DNA of 64,000 bases, taken from the NCBI GenBank assembly GCA_009103225.1, contig RHPI01002090.1, forward strand, positions 892,414 through 956,413, written 5' to 3'. Numbering within the stretch: position 1 is the stretch's first letter; every line of letters starts with the position of its first letter. The notes under the pieces are model-generated. The model had not been told where the DNA came from. It ran no database searches and was given only the letters and a program-made list of their open reading frames with translations. The position numbers and the translations under genes are program-made. Positions 17,227 through 28,786 of the stretch are shown here, one piece after another. Source of the DNA: Chlorokybus atmophyticus. Its lineage: Eukaryota > Plantae > Mesostigma and Chlorokybus algae.

Positions 17227-17382
17227 GCCGCCCACCGCCCACACCAACGCCGAGCAGAAAGCTGCCAATGCTCGCAACCGTTGCAAAGGCTTTCAAATGT
17301 TCAAACACTGCAATGTATTGATGGGCATTTTTGCTACTTGACCAGAAAACTGCAGGACAACTCCTCCAGCATAGCTTTGGGC

Positions 17383-19577
17383 ATGGCGGCGAGGGGCGGG
17401 GCGCCGGTGGCGCTGGCGGGTGCGGCGGCGGTGGCGGCAGTCGGCGCTGCGGCCGGGGTGCTGCTGCTCGGATGGCATAGGGACGGCAACCGCGCGGGCG
17501 GCGGCGACGGGTTGGAGGCTAGTAGCGAGCCTGGCGGGAAGCTGCAGTGGGTGGCTGGGCTGCGCAACGCCGGCAACAACTGCTTTCTCAACGTCGTCCT
17601 GCAGGTGGACATAAAGTTTATTATGTGCCGTGTGTTGGAATGGGCGTATAGTCTATGAGGATAGCCATCCTCGCAAGATGTCGGCCATTGAAATGGGGGA
17701 CTCCAAACGCTGCTGATTGAAAGTCTTACGATGTTGTTTGTGCTCGCAGGCTCTGTCCAGCTGTGGTTCAGTGCTGCGCATGCTTGAAGAGCATGCTTTC
17801 TACACCGAGAAGACGCCGCTGCTGGACGCTTTGGGTTTCACACTGGCTGGTATGCACAAGTCATGCTCATATGCTCACATTCTTTGTGGCTACAATGAAT
17901 ATGACGTGCATGCGGTAGATACGTGCGTGGTGTTGTGGCCATGCACTCTGTTGTATGCTAAGTAGTACCCATAGTACTCACTACTCACAGCCTCATGTTT
18001 AGTCCAGATCGCCATGTTCAATGTGTGTCTTTGTGAGTGACTACCTGTATAGCCATGCAGAGCTCGCGAGGCCTGTCAAGCACGGGACCGTGATCAGCCC
18101 GAAGCAGGTGATGAAGGCGCTCGCAGCGTACGTGCCACACTTTGAGCTACACCACCAGCAGGTGACGCTCACTGCTGCATGCATCTTACAAACCGCTTGG
18201 CTTGGTTGCTTGGTTAACAACTGATATTGCTTGCTTCTTTGCAGGATGCAGCAGAAGCGCTAACGCATCTCATCACTGCCATGCGCTGTGAGCTTGACGA
18301 GCAACTGCAAACACAGACAGCGACAGCAAACAGGCGCCTGTCCATTGCATCATTGACCACACCAGCGGATGGTTATGACGGTTCATGCAATGGCGTGAGG
18401 CAGCTTCACTTCAAGGAGTCTGTCTCTCGTGCGCTTGACCTTGCAACTGAGTCTAGCAGTAGCATACAACAGCTTTGCAAATATGACGAGGAGGTGGAAG
18501 CGGCGAATAATGTGCAGAGGAGTGTAACGGGCACGCTTGCAAGCACAACTTCTGCAGGTGCAGCCATGAGCAGAGATTGGTTCAAACTCAAACGGCAGGC
18601 AACCCTTTCGCCATTGCAGGGTTTGCTAGCCAACTCTCTGTCGTGTTTTTGCGGGCACGAGTATGTCACTCAGTTCTCGCCATTCAGTGTGCTGCCTCTG
18701 CATATTCCACTTGATCCGCGTACGGGTGATGTCAAGCTCGGTACGACGCTGCTGGACTGCTTGCAGCGCTTCACGGCAACCGAGGTTGTTGAGGGTGTAG
18801 CGTGCACACACTGCTCGCATCTAGCCACTGCCCGCGCGCTGGCATCCAATGAAGAAGCCAAGCTTCAGCACAACCAGGTAGTGTGCTCTTGTGTGCCTGT
18901 TGCCACCTATGTACTGCAATACAAGCAAACTGTGTAAGAGTTGATCCCTTGCAGCAGACACACTGTTATTGCAGGTGTTGAAGACCCTTCTTTGGTGCAG
19001 AGTTGCACAGGGGTGTGACTGCCAGCGAGTTGTTCACCAAGCGGGCCTGCCGTGGCACAGCGTCGGTGCCAAAGCATGCAAAAAGATGACGGTCGGGAGG
19101 TTTCCCCCAGTCTTGTGTCTGCAGCTCCAGCGGTCAACTGTGTCCCCAGCAGGAAGGCTGCACAAAGCTGCTGGCCATGTCTCATTCCCGGCAACGCTCA
19201 ATGCGGGACAGCTCCTCGCCCACAGTTTTGAGACATTACCGAATCAAGCTCTAGTGGGACTGGACACAGCCGCAGCAGCCATGTTGACGGGCCAAGCGGC
19301 TCGATCGCTGCTTCTCCGGCAGATGTTGCAAACTGGCAGCATGCCCGGAGCCAACCACGCGCCAACCCACTTGTATAATCTTGTAGCTGTTGTGGTGCAT
19401 TTCGGAACGAGGCAGTCAGGACACTACACAGTGTTTCGCACGCTGAAGGCCGTGGGCAAGGAACAGCAGCAGCAGTGGTTCTCAGTTTCAGATACGCGTG
19501 TCAGACAAGTTACCTTTCAAGAGGTGGAAGCAGCAGAAGCTTCACTGCTACTCTATGAGGCCAAAAGGTGGCGGTAA
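17383..19577 (+). CDS. Ubiquitin-specific protease (C19), USP30/UBP27-like with N-terminal membrane anchor
   Basis: Hydrophobic N-terminus, Cys box GLRNAGNNCFLNVVLQ, HQQDAAEAL, PLQGLLANSLSC, His box AVVVHFGTRQSGHYTVFR, WFSVSDTRV, ASLLLYE. Confidence 0.92.
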
Positions 19578-20499: not shown

Positions 20500-21826
20500 T
20501 TACACCAATGTACAAGGGCATTGTGCTGGTGGGCATACTTTGCCATGGCGGAGCTGGCAGCTCCGCCGAAGCCAATCATGGCCCATTAACCCAGTCCTGT
20601 ACTTTTTGCATACCTGCATCCATCATTCCTCAATCAAGTTTCAGCTATGCAGAAGCATCTGACCATGAAGTGCACCTGTTGCGAGCAGGCTTGAGAGCGC
20701 TGTGGAGATAGTTGCAAGCTCCTTCGAGTAACGCCGTAGGAGGTCGTCCTATGCAATATTACATATTACATAATACATATTACATCAGAACAGTGTCGCA
20801 GTGTGATCTAAGTTGAATCTCCAGCAAGGAGAGGACTCTTGCTCGTCACGCATGCTTACAAGCTCTTTTTGTCCAAAGGATAGGACAGCTTCAATTTGCG
20901 CCATATGCTGGGACAGAAGCGGTGTAATCACCGAGTCAAACACCACTTGGGCGCCCTGCATGTCCTTGATCAGTGGAGGTACAGCTAGAAGCGCATCAGT
21001 CCACAAGAAAGCATGTACAGGTGACCAGGCCATTACATCAAAATACGGAAGTTGCAGCCACAGAAGGAACAACAGCCTTGCTTGTGCGTAGAATGGTATG
21101 CTGCAAGAAAACGACCGTTGAGCATAGTATCTCCCGTCAGTTGATAACACCAGTGACATGCTTACCAGTACAGCAGGCGGCCGCTAAGTCTCTCCGCAAA
21201 CAAGACACACCCGTACACTGCAACAAGTGCATTTCAGCAAGTATGAGAGTGGTTGCAATAGCACAGCATAACGGCATGGCATGGGACCTTGCATGGCGAC
21301 AACATCCAAAACGTCATTACGTGCTATGCACTGTCATTCTGGCTGCTAATGGCGCCGGGCGATGATGACATGCATTTGATGTTCATCACATCAGGACCAT
21401 GCGACAATGGCTGTACCTGACCAGTAGGTAAGCCACTTCTTGTGCTCACGATGCCGCTGCTTTGATTGCAAGACTTTGCTGCTGGCCAGAACCGGGTAAA
21501 GCTCCACTGCCGCACTGCAGCGCAAGAAAGCGATTGCTGCTGAGAGTCTCAGTGCCAATTTGCTATGCGGCCGGTCGTAATGCAGCATAGCTCACCCCAC
21601 GGTCCTGGTTATCACATGCGAAGCTGCAGCGGGCACAAGGAGCAGGCCAAGTCCCACCTGTTGTTGAACCATTGAGTCTAATGACCCATGCGACCTTCTG
21701 GCTGTATCCCTCGCTTACCAGCGCTGTGCCTTTGTTGCCGAGGCTGCATTCGCTGGTATCCGCAGCCGCATTATACCGCTGTGGCTTCGTCGCCGCCTCC
21801 TCAGGCTCAGCTGGCCCGCCGCCCAT
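20500..21826 (-). CDS. HVA22/REEP (TB2/DP1) family membrane protein
   Basis: LYPVLASSKVL..KKWLTYW, PFYAQARLLFLLWLQLP..GAQVVFDSVITPLL. Start codon and last exon are uncertain. Confidence 0.8.
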
Positions 21827-22091
21827 GATCACAATGTCGCTATCTTTGTTCAGAAGCATGCCCACTTGAAACAGCCAAGGCAAGCACTCGGGTCACCGCC
21901 GCCTCCGCCTCCTCCACTGTGTGCAAGCATGCAGCTTGTCTGTTGAACTGCTGGTAGCTTAACCAGGACAGTGCCGTGCTAACCACGTAATTGGCGTATT
22001 TGGCGATCAATGGCTAACCGTAGTTGCGTTTTTAGTTGACCACATAGCACACTTGCTATCAGCCACAACCTAGTAGCTGAGGTGGACGTGG

Positions 22092-25000
22092 ATGATGGCG
22101 GCGACGGCGGCGGGGCGCAGGGCGGGGCTGCTGGCTGGGCAGCTCAATCCTCCCCCGGGCTGCGAAGAGCTGCTTGAGCGAGCGGAGCTGCTTCTGGGTG
22201 GCGAGGAAGCTGCGGGTCCAACTGGCGCCGTCTTCGCCCAGGCCACTTCGTCCTCCGGCCGCTTCGAAGGCGCTCCTGGGTCCAGCAAATGGAAGAACTG
22301 GGCTGGGAACGCCTCTTGCACGCCACGCTACTATCATGAGCCGCAGTCAAAGGTGCGATGGTTAATCACTTACACATGCTTGTGCCTGTCTCTAATCCTT
22401 GTTCGCTACTGTTGACGCTATGATGAGTGCAGCATTTTTCCTTTAGTTTTTTTCAAGTGTTTGAAGAAACCTGATTTAATGGCAGGACATCTGACCTGTA
22501 ATTTGGTAACAGCTACTATGAACCTAATCATGGTAGCTGTTACCGATTCTGTGTTCTTACGTGTTCCTAAACACCTTGATAGTATCAACTGAAAACCGCA
22601 GGTAGCATGTTTCAAACTGTTCGGGACAGCCTGTCCCTTCTGTGGCCACCAAGAGTTGTGACTCTCATCTATCTATGTATACCAGGAAGAGGTGATTGAC
22701 ATACTGAAGCGCGCAGCCGAAGCCGGGGAGAAAGTGGTAGTGGTACGTTGAGATTGTGTAGACTGTGACTGTGTGAATGTGTTAACGGCATGCACACAAC
22801 GTACTTGGTGTTGCACTGTCAAGCTGCCTAGTTCTGTACGTCCTGCATCATGTACGTAGTGCACTGGTGCAGGACGCACAGTTCAGATTTTCAAGCAGAA
22901 TGTATGTTCATGCAAACATACATTGCCTGCTGCCGTCTGCTGCAGGTTGGAGATGGCCACTCCAATAACGACATAGCTTGCACCAGCGACCACATGCTGT
23001 CACTTGATCGGTGTGATAGAGTGATCACTGTGGACGATAAGGCACTCACAGTCACGGTTCAGGTACGTTTCAACCATCTATTATCGACATTGTTATGGTG
23101 GCGGGTTTTGACGCTTCATGTGCTTGGTGGCAGGGTGGTGTTCGGCTCAAACAGCTCAACGAGTTTCTTCCTCTTCATGGCATGGCAATGGCCAATCTGG
23201 GGTCCATATCGGAGCAGAGCATTGCAGGAGCAATATCGACAGCTGTGCATGGCACGGGGATGCGCTATGGCACATTGTCCACGCGCGTGTTGGAGTTGGA
23301 GCTGATCACAGCGACAGGCCAAGTCCTTTCGTGCAGTCGGCAGCAGAACGAACGGGTCTTCATGGCGGCGCTGTGCGGGCTAGGAGCTCTTGGAGTGATT
23401 TCCTCGCTGAAAATTCAGTGCGAGAAGGCGTTCAAGCTGCGATCCGTGGAGGTTTGTTCGCATTGTGTGCTTACGGGTCATGCTTGTCTTTCTGTTGGTT
23501 TTCCAAGTGAAGTTGCCCTATGAAGAGAAATAGCGTCATGAGGCCAGGCTGGTGCTTGTCGCCGCCGGCTATGCTTGTTTACACGTATCAGATCAGAAGG
23601 GCTATATGTGGGCTATATGTCGAATGGTCGTTAGGCAGTTGCGCACTAAGTAGCGCCCTACGATTACAACCATATATCAGTGAGGTACCCACCGGTGAGA
23701 GCTGAATGTACTAAGTTTATGATGGGCGCGGCATAATCACGTGCTTGTGAGCATGCAGGTCAACTGTGTTGCTTAACCTAGCAGTTAACCAAATATCTGG
23801 CTTATTTCTTGCAGATTCCATCAACACTGACAGACACATTGGAGCACCTCGACAAGTATACCTCAGACGCTGAACACTTCCGTTTCTGGTATATGTTGTG
23901 CGGCGCACCCTGTCATCCGTATGCGTTGCTGCATGGCACCGCAGTTAACCAGCAACATCCACTTGTCAGGTACTTTCCTCACACAGAGAGAACTGTTGTT
24001 TGGCGGGCTGAACGCACGACAGAACCCAATACCCCTGAGGACACTTCCAAGTTGGGGTGGTTCAAGGTGCTCTTGCAATGCTTGTCTGTGCAGCTACTTT
24101 GAATGACTTGTGTATAGTTGGTAGATGCGGCTGTTGTCGCTGGCATGTACATTTGCATTTGACAAGGAGTTTGGCGGAGCTTACTATGTGATACGTGAGT
24201 GCGGACATTTAGCTTCCTCATTGATGTGCTGATGTGCAGAACACGGTTATTGGGTACCACCTCTTGGAGCTTTTGTACTACCTTGCTGGATATGCTCCAT
24301 CTGCCGTCCCTATCATCAACCGGTTTTATCGCAAGCTGCTCTTCAATGAGGAGAAGGTGTGTTGCTGGAGGTAGCACACATTGCCATATTGTTACAAGTT
24401 GCATAGCAAGGTGGCGCAACCTGTCCAGGTGAAAATTGGCCGCAGCGACCTGGTGTTCAACTTCGACTGCCTGTTCAGACAACATGTGAATGAATGGGCC
24501 ATTCCCCAGGAGAACTGTGGCAAGGCGCTCATGGGTTTGAAAAAGCTCATTGAGGAGAATCAATTCAAAGTCCATTATCCTGTTGAGGTGCTTTGCTCGA
24601 GCCTTGCATGACCTGTGGACCCTAATGCGTTGGGTTTGGTGAGGTTCTGTGTACACAAATGTTGATCCCTATAGGTTCGATTTGTTGCTGCGGACGATGT
24701 GTGGCTGAGCCCATGCTATGGACGCGAAACCTGTTACATTGGTGTTATCATGTACAGACCCTTTGGCGCGGACGTGCCATCTGCGGAGTAAGTTGTGCAT
24801 GTTGGTGCTGCGCACAACCCCAAGCGCATTGCAGGATTGTATTGAATGTGCTTCATGACACCTTGTCAGGTATGTCAAGAAGTACTTTGACAAGTATGAG
24901 GCTTTGATGCTGTCGCTTGACGGAAGGCCTCATTGGGCCAAACCGCACTCGCTGCGAAAACCGGACTTTCAAAAGTCGTATCCCAAGGTGCGCGTGTCTT

Positions 25001-25175
25001 GTGTTTGGCTCTCACACAGCCTGATGAGAGAGTGGAGCATGTGACGATGCAAGCAGACTTGTGCGTACTAAGTTGTGCTGCATGCCAGTTTGACGACTTC
25101 CTTGAAGTCCGTAGCGAGCTGGATCCTCACCACTTATTCAGCAACAAGTACCTTCAGCGGGTGTTAGATGATTGA
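22092..25175 (+). CDS. GULO: L-gulono-1,4-lactone oxidase / D-arabinono-1,4-lactone oxidase (GULO/ALO type)
   Basis: About 10 exons. WKNWAG, VGDGHS (covalent FAD His), [91 protein letters not shown]. Confidence 0.9.
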
Positions 25176-26222
25176 GTCGTTCACTGTATTGCCAGATGCC
25201 TATATTACCAAACATGCCTACAACATTGGAGCTCCTTCTCGTTTGTCATGTGCTCGTATTGCTGCCAGCGTTGTTGGGATCACTGGCATTCATTTGTTTG
25301 GAGTTGGTACCAGATACGGCTGAGTTGCGCTCAGCGCATTGGCACGAGGACACAATACTAGTTGTGGTCCTGGCATAGATGCCTGTACTGTTCAGCTCTG
25401 CTCGTTAAAGTGCCGCTTGCAAGCTAGAGAACTGGAGACTACCTTTATGCAGAGGTTATGGGCAGTGCTTAGCTAACAAGTGAACTGTCAAACTTGATAT
25501 GGCACCTGTGTATTTGGCTTGATGAAAGAATTCGGCCATCATGTATGGGTGTGCTGTTTACTGTGTACCGGGTATCTGAGTGGCAGATGCATAGCATCGG
25601 GCACAGCAGCAAGGCACATGCAGGGGGGAGAACTTTTATTCCACCAGGGGCTTACACGCTAACTATGTGCCAACTAAGTGCACGTGAGTGGGGCGGAGGG
25701 ATGGGCGAGGCAGGGCAGGGCAAGATGGCAAAGCAACCGTGTACAAACCTGTAGCAACAGGTGCCATACATTCTCTTGGTTGATTTCCGTAAGTTTTGGG
25801 CACGCCTTGTTGATGCTGTTGTTCAATGCTTTCCCAGACATATGGCGCACTATACAATAATGTCACCTTTCTTTTGTACAATGAGCTTGGTGCAATTTTA
25901 CATTCGTATATGCACAGCAACAGGGTGTTGTGTGTAACAGCAGCATGCCTGCACATGTTCAACAACACCCCGAGTCTTTGTACACCAACGCAGTTTCTGT
26001 AGGCATACATCCACTATCTGATTGTTGCTATACACTCACCCTATGTCACTTTGCTACACTGTTAGACTACACTTCACAATGATACAAAGGATGCAAGGCA
26101 CTCCAGCCCGGCATGCTGATGAGCTCAGAGCGCATCCCGCCAACGGCAACGTCTGGTTTGGGGATGCGCTCTTCATGGAGCCGGAGGAGAACACCTCATC
26201 AAGTTAATGAATGTCTCCCTCA

Positions 26223-27529: not shown

Positions 27530-28786
27530 ATGGCTGCTTCCATCCTTAGCCGGCTATCACTGAGGCACAGGCTTGCTCGTAGCGTATGCACTGCAGCAGC
27601 AGCTTCAGGCAGTTACGGGCAGACCCGGGCTCTGCTCATTGCCAACTCCACGCTTTACGGCGGCACATACTTCGGCCACTGCGGCGAAACCATCCAGAAC
27701 TTCTTGAAAGGGTGTGAGAGCGCAGCTCGTGTACCCCGTAACTCTGCGTGCTTGCTTGTTGGCTTTCTGTACACAAGTAGGCCTGTACTGCCTGCAGTTG
27801 GGTGATTGTGTGACCTCATTCAGAGGTGGCGTCGAGAGCGTGCTCTTCGTGCCGTACGCATTGCACGATTACGACAAGTACTTTGGCAATCCGGGTGCGA
27901 TCAAGTATGATGCTTTGGGCCAGCCCATTGACCACACTGGCCGGCCGAAAGCTCGGTTGCAGGAGCTTGGCTTTGACTGCACGTCCATACACCATGCAAA
28001 GGACCCGGTACTCAGCACATCATAGCTGTGCTGTTGTTATATGTGTGTGCAAACAGCGACAGTGACCAGTGATGTTTTGCCACAATTGTACGCAGTTGAA
28101 GGCAGTGCAAGATGCAACGGCGATATTCATTGGAGGAGGCAACAGCTTCATGCTACTCAACAAGTTGTACACTTTGCGCCTTGTCACGGCAATAAGGGAC
28201 AGGGTGCGTGCTGGGGAACTGCTGTACATGGGTTCGTCGGCAGGAAGCACGTGCGCTGGTGAGTGCCACGCAACACAAGCATTGGCTGACAGCAGCATCA
28301 ATGATAGACATGGCATTGACGCGCACGCGTGTAGGTCAGACCATCAACGCTTCCATCTGCATGCCCATTGTGTACCCGCCAACATTTGATGCTCTCGGCC
28401 TTGTCCCTTTCAACATCAGCCCGCACTATGCTGATCCTGAACCCAAAGCCAAGTAAGGAGGGATATGCTTAGCACCATGCTCATTTGCACCTTCACCACC
28501 ATCATGAACAACAACATAACCTTGTGCACGTCGTGTTAGGCTGGCAGAGGCCGGGTTTACCGTGAGCATGGAGGAGAACAGGGAGCAGCGCATCCAGCAG
28601 TATACGGATGAAGAGCCTGGAGCGCATGTTGTGGTCGGGTTGCGTGAAGGCACGCTGTTGGAGGTTAACCATGGCACTGTGACCCTCCATGGCAAGCGCA
28701 ATTGCCGGGTTTTCCGCCCAAAACAAGCCCCTGAGGAAGTTGCGCCTGGCAGCACTAGTCTTGAAGGCCTGCTCGGCTCGAGATAA
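27530..28786 (+). CDS. pepE: Dipeptidase E (peptidase S51) with predicted organellar transit peptide
   Basis: [35 protein letters not shown], nucleophile motif [46 protein letters not shown]. Arg/Ser/Ala-rich N-terminus. About 6 exons. Confidence 0.92.

Follow-up and report, generated by a model that had tools for sequence, protein, structure and literature searches.

Introduction

The closest described system is that of the green-lineage alga Chlorokybus atmophyticus itself. In its transcriptome Wheeler et al. (2015; PMC4396506) reported an L-gulonolactone oxidase (GULO; transcript JO192417.1) along with the remaining steps of the plant route to ascorbate including VTC2, while no L-galactonolactone dehydrogenase (GLDH) was found, and the hypothesis that GLDH replaced GULO was built partly on this species. 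Galdieria, also early-branching within the Archaeplastida, likewise possesses GULO without GLDH (PMC4396506), and the Chlorokybus case was repeated in a 2024 review (PMC11066809). The present study deals with the corresponding gene in the genome, situated at 22092-25175 (+) of a stretch of 64,000 nucleotides (assembly GCA_009103225.1, contig RHPI01002090.1, positions 892,414 to 956,413, forward strand), the whole of which is called the window and to which all positions refer. Its identity with the gene behind transcript JO192417.1 was assumed.

The features by which enzymes of this kind can be told apart have been worked out experimentally (Boverio et al., 2024; PMC11099136). A Leu or His decides between non-covalent and covalent binding of flavin adenine dinucleotide (FAD), and Ala or Gly at position 113 decides between dehydrogenase and oxidase, the exchange A113G alone being sufficient to turn L-galactonolactone dehydrogenase (GalDH) into an oxidase. 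Furthermore, Gly413 of GalDH goes along with a strict preference for L-galactonolactone, whereas Asn363 of animal GULO confers a relaxed preference, so that L-gulonolactone is used. The origin of the His/Gly pair was placed in the opisthokont ancestor by a 2024 ancestral-reconstruction study, in which neither Chlorokybus nor Galdieria is mentioned (PMC11099136).

No green-lineage organism other than Chlorokybus has been reported to end an otherwise plant-type vitamin C pathway with an H2O2-producing oxidase instead of GLDH, and this makes Chlorokybus the living test case for the replacement of GULO by GLDH after plastid acquisition (Wheeler et al., 2015). Here we come to the conclusion that the gene very probably encodes an ascorbate-forming aldonolactone oxidase of the eukaryote clade that unites GULO with the D-arabinono-1,4-lactone oxidases (ALO). 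This main finding is already known and the gene is in the public annotation; a preliminary description of the window, made from its letters only, had rightly referred to such a report. What is added is a genomic model of the gene that has been verified, the formal exclusion of both GLDH and the plant GULLO family, a prediction of L-galactonolactone as substrate and a testable proposal for the site of H2O2 formation.

Results

Gene structure and spliced contigs

The gene consists of 11 exons with 505 codons followed by TGA; the frame is unbroken and all ten introns show GT..AG ends, as seen from the sequence and a check of splice sites and frame. Two start codons lie side by side, ATG at 22092 and a second ATG at 22095, which is the annotated start, and the TGA stop ends at 25175. 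An in-frame TAG (22074-22076) is found upstream of both, and the next in-frame ATG follows only at residue 123, beyond the histidine expected to bind the flavin. From the second Met on, the model equals the EukProt/JGI protein P0166 of Chlorokybus atmophyticus (jgi/Chlat1/3972/Chrsp26S04222, 504 aa; EP00898 P003301) with 0 mismatches over 504 aa. P0166 was the stored protein used for whole-protein searches, and the numbering of His110, Gly167, Gly422 and of the N-terminal leader follows it. The parts of the gene are as follows:

22092..22352, + strand: exon 1, with both ATGs and the N-terminal extension, after which the FAD domain sets in (KWKNWAGN...); JGI model P0166 begins at 22095
22686..22742, + strand: exon 2, 19 codons; contig joints 22350/22684 and 22741/22945
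22946..23062, + strand: exon 3, opening with VGDGHS (22946-22963), His110 codon at 22958-22960; Pfam FAD_binding_4
23134..23451, + strand: exon 4, NLGS at 23194-23205, Gly167 codon at 23200-23202; FAD_binding_4, 49 bits
23815..23888, + strand: exon 5, ending in phase 2; frame check and spliced contigs
23970..24066, + strand: exon 6; frame check, Pfam and spliced contigs
24240..24356, + strand: exon 7; frame check, Pfam and spliced contigs
24429..24587, + strand: exon 8, the last codon (24585-24587) being Glu399 of a Glu-x-Arg pair; Pfam ALO, 53.8 bits
24675..24787, + strand: exon 9, with Arg401 (24678-24680) and substrate-site Gly422 (24741-24743); alignment to GLDH
24870..24987, + strand: exon 10, with the HWAK motif at 24931-24942; frame check, Pfam and alignment
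25089..25175, + strand: exon 11 and TGA, C-terminus ...VLDD, no type 1 peroxisomal targeting signal (PTS1); frame check
25176..25518, + strand: 3' untranslated region (UTR) as far as the contigs reach, about 340 nt; contig ends at 25506 (X2) and 25518 (X1, followed by adapter letters)

Each of two public sequencing runs from separate studies (X1, 2021; X2, 2013), whose RNA type was a guess, gave one contig of about 1.8 kb that matches the exons with 0 mismatches and skips all ten introns exactly at their predicted borders. The sampled words found in X1 and X2 amounted to 0.40 and 0.36 of the set, which is about the share of the exons and therefore compatible with RNA. The native multi-intron structure claimed in the preliminary description was thereby borne out, and the gene seen in its spliced mRNA form, in both probable RNA runs.

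Affiliation of the protein

Matches of single exons to Pfam were colinear, FAD_binding_4 positions 30-139 being followed by ALO positions 42-258, and PF01565 together with PF04030 is on record for P0166 as a precomputed annotation. Among curated hidden Markov models (HMMs), P0166 passed that of sugar-1,4-lactone oxidases (TIGR01678; 447.7 bits, cutoff 396.8) and, with a score lower than this, that of bacterial FAD-linked oxidoreductases (TIGR01679; 333 bits, cutoff 292.25). It failed the models of GLDH (TIGR01676; 158.6 bits, cutoff 458.25) and of the plant GULLO type (TIGR01677; 110.1 bits, cutoff 383.1), the latter being matched by the N-terminal half alone. TIGR01678 scores of 452 for Galdieria GULO, 448 for Zancudomyces GULO and 709 for hamster GULO were obtained, and all of these proteins ranked the four models similarly.

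Among the best 120 relatives of P0166, the nearest named ones were three Galdieria GULOs with 49-51% identity (504-527 bits), after which came proteins of early-diverging fungi, of protists and metatranscriptomes and of animals with 41-48%; whole-protein identity never exceeded 51%. In the same set no other named member of the Viridiplantae and no plant GULLO was present. A secreted or cell-wall FAD oxidoreductase of the plant GULLO type would contain FAD_binding_4 and ALO domains as well, since these are common to both families, but the shortfall against TIGR01677, the restriction of that match to the N-terminal half and the lack of plant GULLO among the relatives speak so clearly against it that we regard this alternative as highly improbable.

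Exon 4 retrieved 4664 relatives from a representative library, the top ones with 54-63% identity, and the lowest of the best 150 still scored 88.7 bits; GLDH scores about 60-69 bits against this exon. In the protein atlas exon 4 met generic FAD_binding_4 fragment clusters only, and exon 8 alone gave no match in the PDB.

A careful maximum likelihood tree was calculated with IQ-TREE from 63 rows and 462 columns, comprising no GLDH, GULLO or alditol oxidase rows. The Chlorokybus protein was placed inside a eukaryote GULO/ALO clade of 52 rows (support 100/99), which includes animals, fungi, Galdieria, Naegleria, Stenamoeba and Nonionella. The sister group contained 11 rows; all ten that were scanned failed TIGR01678 and passed only TIGR01679. 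Within the GULO/ALO clade the backbone was unresolved, with Chlorokybus branching first at weak support (88/72), and it was likewise unresolved in the tree of Wheeler et al. (PMC4396506). A clade of Chlorokybus and Galdieria was absent from the best tree; enforcing it lowers the log-likelihood by 8.9 units, and such a clade is not rejected (approximately unbiased (AU) test, p = 0.146).

The preliminary description had named a grouping with GLDH or plant GULLO as one outcome that would speak against it. By curated HMM cutoffs and pairwise alignments, as distinct from a joint tree, the protein groups with neither. HMM cutoffs, the tree and the residue alignment to GLDH structure sequences described below thus support its assignment as an aldonolactone oxidase of the GULO/ALO clade, neither GLDH nor plant GULLO.

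Two cyanobacterial proteins, P0273 from Moorena bouillonii and P0276 from Okeania sp., share a long branch that likewise fell within the eukaryote-type GULO/ALO clade. They are 43-44% identical to the Chlorokybus enzyme and may stem from a transfer from a eukaryote to cyanobacteria.

That the Chlorokybus gene is itself a contaminant or was recently acquired from a fungus or bacterium might be considered, given that its nearest named relatives are not green and that cyanobacterial proteins occur within the clade. Against this stand the ten spliceosomal introns, spliced in two independent runs, the eukaryotic neighbour gene arranged head to head with it (see below), the distance to every one of the best 120 relatives and the fact that a clade with the red alga Galdieria was not rejected. 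Such an origin is accordingly given hardly any probability, and the gene is regarded as native to Chlorokybus.

Active-site residues and predicted chemistry

The His in VGDGHS and the Gly in NLGS, on which the preliminary description had relied, are present (codons 22958-22960 and 23200-23202), and its contrast with plant GLDH holds: His110 aligns with the Leu of VGSGLS and Gly167 with Ala113. In an alignment of the model with 64 homologues, 60 of the 65 rows carry His in the His110 column. Opposite Gly167 lies residue 113, an Ala in the GLDH structure 8QMY and a Gly in the A113G variant 8QNC. The Glu-Arg pair of GLDH (PIEQRW), placed in the active site by Leferink et al. (cited in PMC11099136), is aligned with PVEVRF of Chlorokybus, with Glu399 and Arg401. 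The substrate-site residue is Gly422 in CYIGVIM, which aligns with Gly413 of vGalDH in SWVGIIM.

The Gly422 column was compared in 214 full-length relatives. Asn occupies it in all 13 animal rows, while Gly is found in Chlorokybus, the three Galdieria species, all 12 labelled fungi, Naegleria, Willaertia, Stenamoeba and Nonionella. At the site of mGULO Asn363, where Asn marks the animal L-gulonolactone oxidase, Chlorokybus hence has Gly. The designation as animal/fungal-type GULO in the preliminary description therefore stands with respect to the clade and fails with respect to the animal type at the substrate site; judged by its residues, the enzyme is better described as of the fungal/protist kind within the GULO/ALO clade. 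Similarly, its C-terminal half had been said to track vertebrate GULO closely. Identity to hamster GULO amounts to 44% there (43% overall), but Galdieria GULO is closer with 55%.

Two side observations concern the distribution of these residues. Asn in the Gly422 column is shared by the holozoan Pigoraptor, the metatranscriptome protein P0266 and additional unlabelled rows. The His/Gly oxidase pair is not confined to opisthokonts, as Archaeplastida, Heterolobosea, Amoebozoa and Rhizaria are each represented among the rows that have it.

Taken as a triad, His110, Gly167 and Gly422 predict an oxidase with covalent flavin and a sugar pocket of the GalDH or non-animal kind. In line with established family enzymology, FAD would be attached to His110 through an 8-alpha-N1-histidyl bond, and the reduced flavin would be reoxidised by O2, yielding H2O2. 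Gly422 and the presence of the plant L-galactose route (VTC2) in the genome make L-galactono-1,4-lactone, and not L-gulono-1,4-lactone, the most likely physiological substrate.

An AlphaFold2 model, calculated from an alignment of 54 rows, reached a mean predicted local distance difference test score (pLDDT) of 89.3 and a predicted template modelling score of 0.86. The best Foldseek matches were GLDH (template modelling scores 0.77-0.84) and alditol oxidase, with a structure-based identity to GLDH of just 24-30%. In sequence searches of the PDB, too, GLDH entries came out best, led by the A113G oxidase variant 8QNC with 187 bits. It might be argued from this, from an FAD half that is 40-45% identical to GLDH and from Gly422, which is the GalDH state, that the enzyme functions as a GLDH-like dehydrogenase despite its clade, passing electrons to cytochrome c and forming no H2O2. 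The rank of GLDH in the PDB says little, as no GULO structure is contained in it; the score for TIGR01676 remains far below the cutoff, and His takes the place of Leu and Gly that of the gatekeeper Ala, the exchange which by itself suffices for an oxidase in GalDH (PMC11099136). A dehydrogenase is hence considered very unlikely.

A further alternative concerns the product. As an oxidase of the fungal style the enzyme might convert D-arabinono-1,4-lactone and thus provide erythroascorbate instead of ascorbate, for it has the His/Gly/Gly triad in common with early fungal homologues that are named ALO by their sources and is 44-48% identical to them. However, the plant L-galactose route is kept, with VTC2 reported (PMC4396506), and enzymes of the clade generally accept L-galactonolactone; which lactone is converted in vivo depends on supply. 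We regard this alternative as unlikely and keep to an oxidase that forms ascorbate.

N-terminal leader

An N-terminal extension of about 60 aa had been pointed out in the preliminary description. It is real and measures about 60-66 aa, homology to all relatives beginning near residue 65. Ala, Gly, Leu and Arg abound in residues 1-23, which contain no acidic residue and have a net charge of +2; residues 24-40 are strongly acidic. In the AlphaFold model pLDDT falls below 50 at residues 1-21 and 35-54. The 66-residue extension would act as a flexible leader of the targeting type, for which the following element hints at a putative destination:

22119..22145, + strand: codons of a nonapeptide resembling a type 2 peroxisomal targeting signal (PTS2), RAGLLAGQL (P0166 residues 9-17); motif comparison

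We take the PTS2 consensus to be R-[LVIQ]-x-x-[LVIHQ]-[LSGAK]-x-[HQ]-[LAF]. RAGLLAGQL, preceded by Arg and followed by NPPP, matches five of the six constrained positions, with Ala at position 2. The nonapeptide lies within a helix that is predicted with low confidence (residues 2-16), and a loose PTS2 pattern arises in 1.7% of shuffles of the Chlorokybus leader.

Peroxisomal signals of a stricter form were met with in relatives. Counted over the 211 relatives that begin with M and contain the NW anchor, the strict R[LI]x5HL pattern occurs in the N-terminal extension of four (P0080, P0120, P0265, P0284), whereas 0.06 would be expected by shuffling, and near-canonical versions are found in three more (P0266, P0279, P0197), one of which belongs to the amoebozoan Stenamoeba (RRLNMLVGHF). 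The PTS2-bearing homologues come from protists or metatranscriptomes; for P0265, encoding contigs turned up in JGI metatranscriptomes only. PTS1-type ends of the form [SA][KR][LM] (AKL, SKL, ARL, SRL) are possessed by 45 of 212 full-length homologues, mostly from early-diverging fungi, namely Mucoromycota, Zoopagomycota, Glomeromycota and chytrids; the localisation of the fungal enzyme is called unknown in a 2024 GULO review. According to the passage of PMC8919083 in which Braun (1999) is cited, mouse GULO was observed in peroxisomes.

The PTS2 and PTS1 signals in relatives strengthen the peroxisomal lead and suggest peroxisomal targeting of the Chlorokybus enzyme. We propose tentatively, as something possible but doubtful, that Chlorokybus makes ascorbate in peroxisomes, into which a degenerate PTS2 in the leader would import an H2O2-producing L-galactonolactone oxidase. 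To this same proposal, and judged jointly with it, belongs the wider rule that non-animal GULO/ALO enzymes might be peroxisomal. Two points count against it, the PTS2-like motif being doubly degenerate and the leader being equally conceivable as a short algal presequence for mitochondrion or plastid.

The latter, a mitochondrial or plastid presequence or else an extension devoid of any targeting role, has in our judgement slightly better than an even chance. The composition and charge of residues 1-23 fit a presequence, GLDH is mitochondrial, as is yeast ALO, and position 2 of the PTS2-like motif does not conform to the consensus. Less favourable to it are that the Arg residues are only two and adjacent, that the helical moment, 0.28 over 18 residues, is no more than modest, that an acidic segment follows in residues 24-40 and that relatives carry canonical PTS2 or PTS1.

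A leader shared by Chlorokybus and Galdieria was considered as well and rejected, as the N-terminal extensions show no similarity.

Neighbouring genes and other observations in the window

A gene of the TB2/DP1/HVA22 family (20785-21917, -) is arranged head to head with the oxidase gene, and by the spliced contigs their 5' ends are <=206 bp apart. Its beginning was recovered as follows:

21563..21917, - strand: 5' end of the TB2/DP1/HVA22-family gene with an intron at ~21656-21716; X1 contig 21717-21917, joint 21655/21717 with CT..AC ends, the Pfam match lying farther downstream

The shortness of the intergenic region suggests a shared bidirectional promoter region. Elsewhere in the window, exons of a USP-type ubiquitin carboxyl-terminal hydrolase are located at 17281-19577 (+) (Pfam UCH, 74.9 bits; Cys-box fragment 17281-17655) and exons of a peptidase S51 of the dipeptidase E / cyanophycinase family at 27530-28389 (+) (Pfam, 64.4 bits). 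An Rfam search of the whole window gave no match.

From a DNA run that carries the label of a different organism (X3) came short contigs of low depth that are identical to intronic and UTR parts of the locus (21892-21909, 22097-22114), besides one unrelated contig that touches GCC/GCG repeats only. That sample may contain Chlorokybus DNA.

Discussion

Overall, the gene would encode the ascorbate-making aldonolactone oxidase of Chlorokybus atmophyticus, a two-domain flavoenzyme of the VAO family with an FAD_binding_4 domain and an ALO cap, and this oxidase would occupy the position held by GLDH in other green plants. Several points have to be set against this view. The function of the enzyme is predicted from sequence, gene structure and model. 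GLDH and GULLO are excluded on the strength of HMM cutoffs and pairwise scores, these families being no part of the tree. Covalent flavinylation and the use of O2 are predicted from residues alone, and the predicted substrate preference rests on a single residue, following a rule that was tested in a GalDH background (G413N) and not in GULO/ALO. Finally, the spliced contigs begin at 22123/22124 in a GCG-rich stretch, so that 22092-22122 with the start codon is uncovered, which we infer to be an assembly break.

In the papers searched, no mention was found of the substrate-site Gly in the algal enzyme, of a PTS2-like leader or of how widely PTS1 and PTS2 signals occur across the family; Gly422 with its prediction of L-galactonolactone and the PTS2-like leader may be new points. 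A peroxisomal site, if true, would place a source of H2O2 beside peroxide-removing enzymes, and the green lineage would have shifted the last step of ascorbate formation from the peroxisome, where it was carried out by an oxidase, to the mitochondrion with GLDH. Also if true, the His/Gly oxidase pair would predate the opisthokonts, which disagrees with how the 2024 ancestral-reconstruction study puts it.

In land plants GLDH is an assembly factor of complex I (cf. PDB 7A24). Should GLDH truly be missing from the Chlorokybus genome, mitochondrial complex I would be assembled there without this factor.

Comparison with known systems

Of the known enzymes, the GULOs of Galdieria sulphuraria, G. 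yellowstonensis and G. phlegrea (P0169, P0172, P0264) resemble that of Chlorokybus in the His/Gly/Gly triad and in an N-terminal extension of ~60 aa, but their extensions are acidic, lack a PTS2-like motif and are dissimilar to the Chlorokybus leader. Vertebrate GULO, represented by Cricetulus (P0253; 43% identity), has the same pair of domains, the His for covalent FAD, the gatekeeper Gly and HWAK; animal GULO differs in the Asn at the substrate site, the lack of a leader and its nature as an enzyme of the endoplasmic reticulum membrane (PMC4396506, PMC11505616). GLDH is like the Chlorokybus enzyme in fold (template modelling scores 0.79-0.84), in the Glu-x-Arg pair, in the substrate-site Gly and probably in the physiological substrate, whereas Leu stands for the flavinylation His and Ala for the gatekeeper Gly. 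The trypanosome L-galactonolactone / D-arabinonolactone oxidase, which was compared from the literature only, belongs to the same clade (PMC4396506) and is glycosomal, and so offers a precedent for a peroxisomal enzyme; its signal is a C-terminal PTS1, SHL (PMC11505616), as opposed to the N-terminal PTS2-like motif of Chlorokybus.

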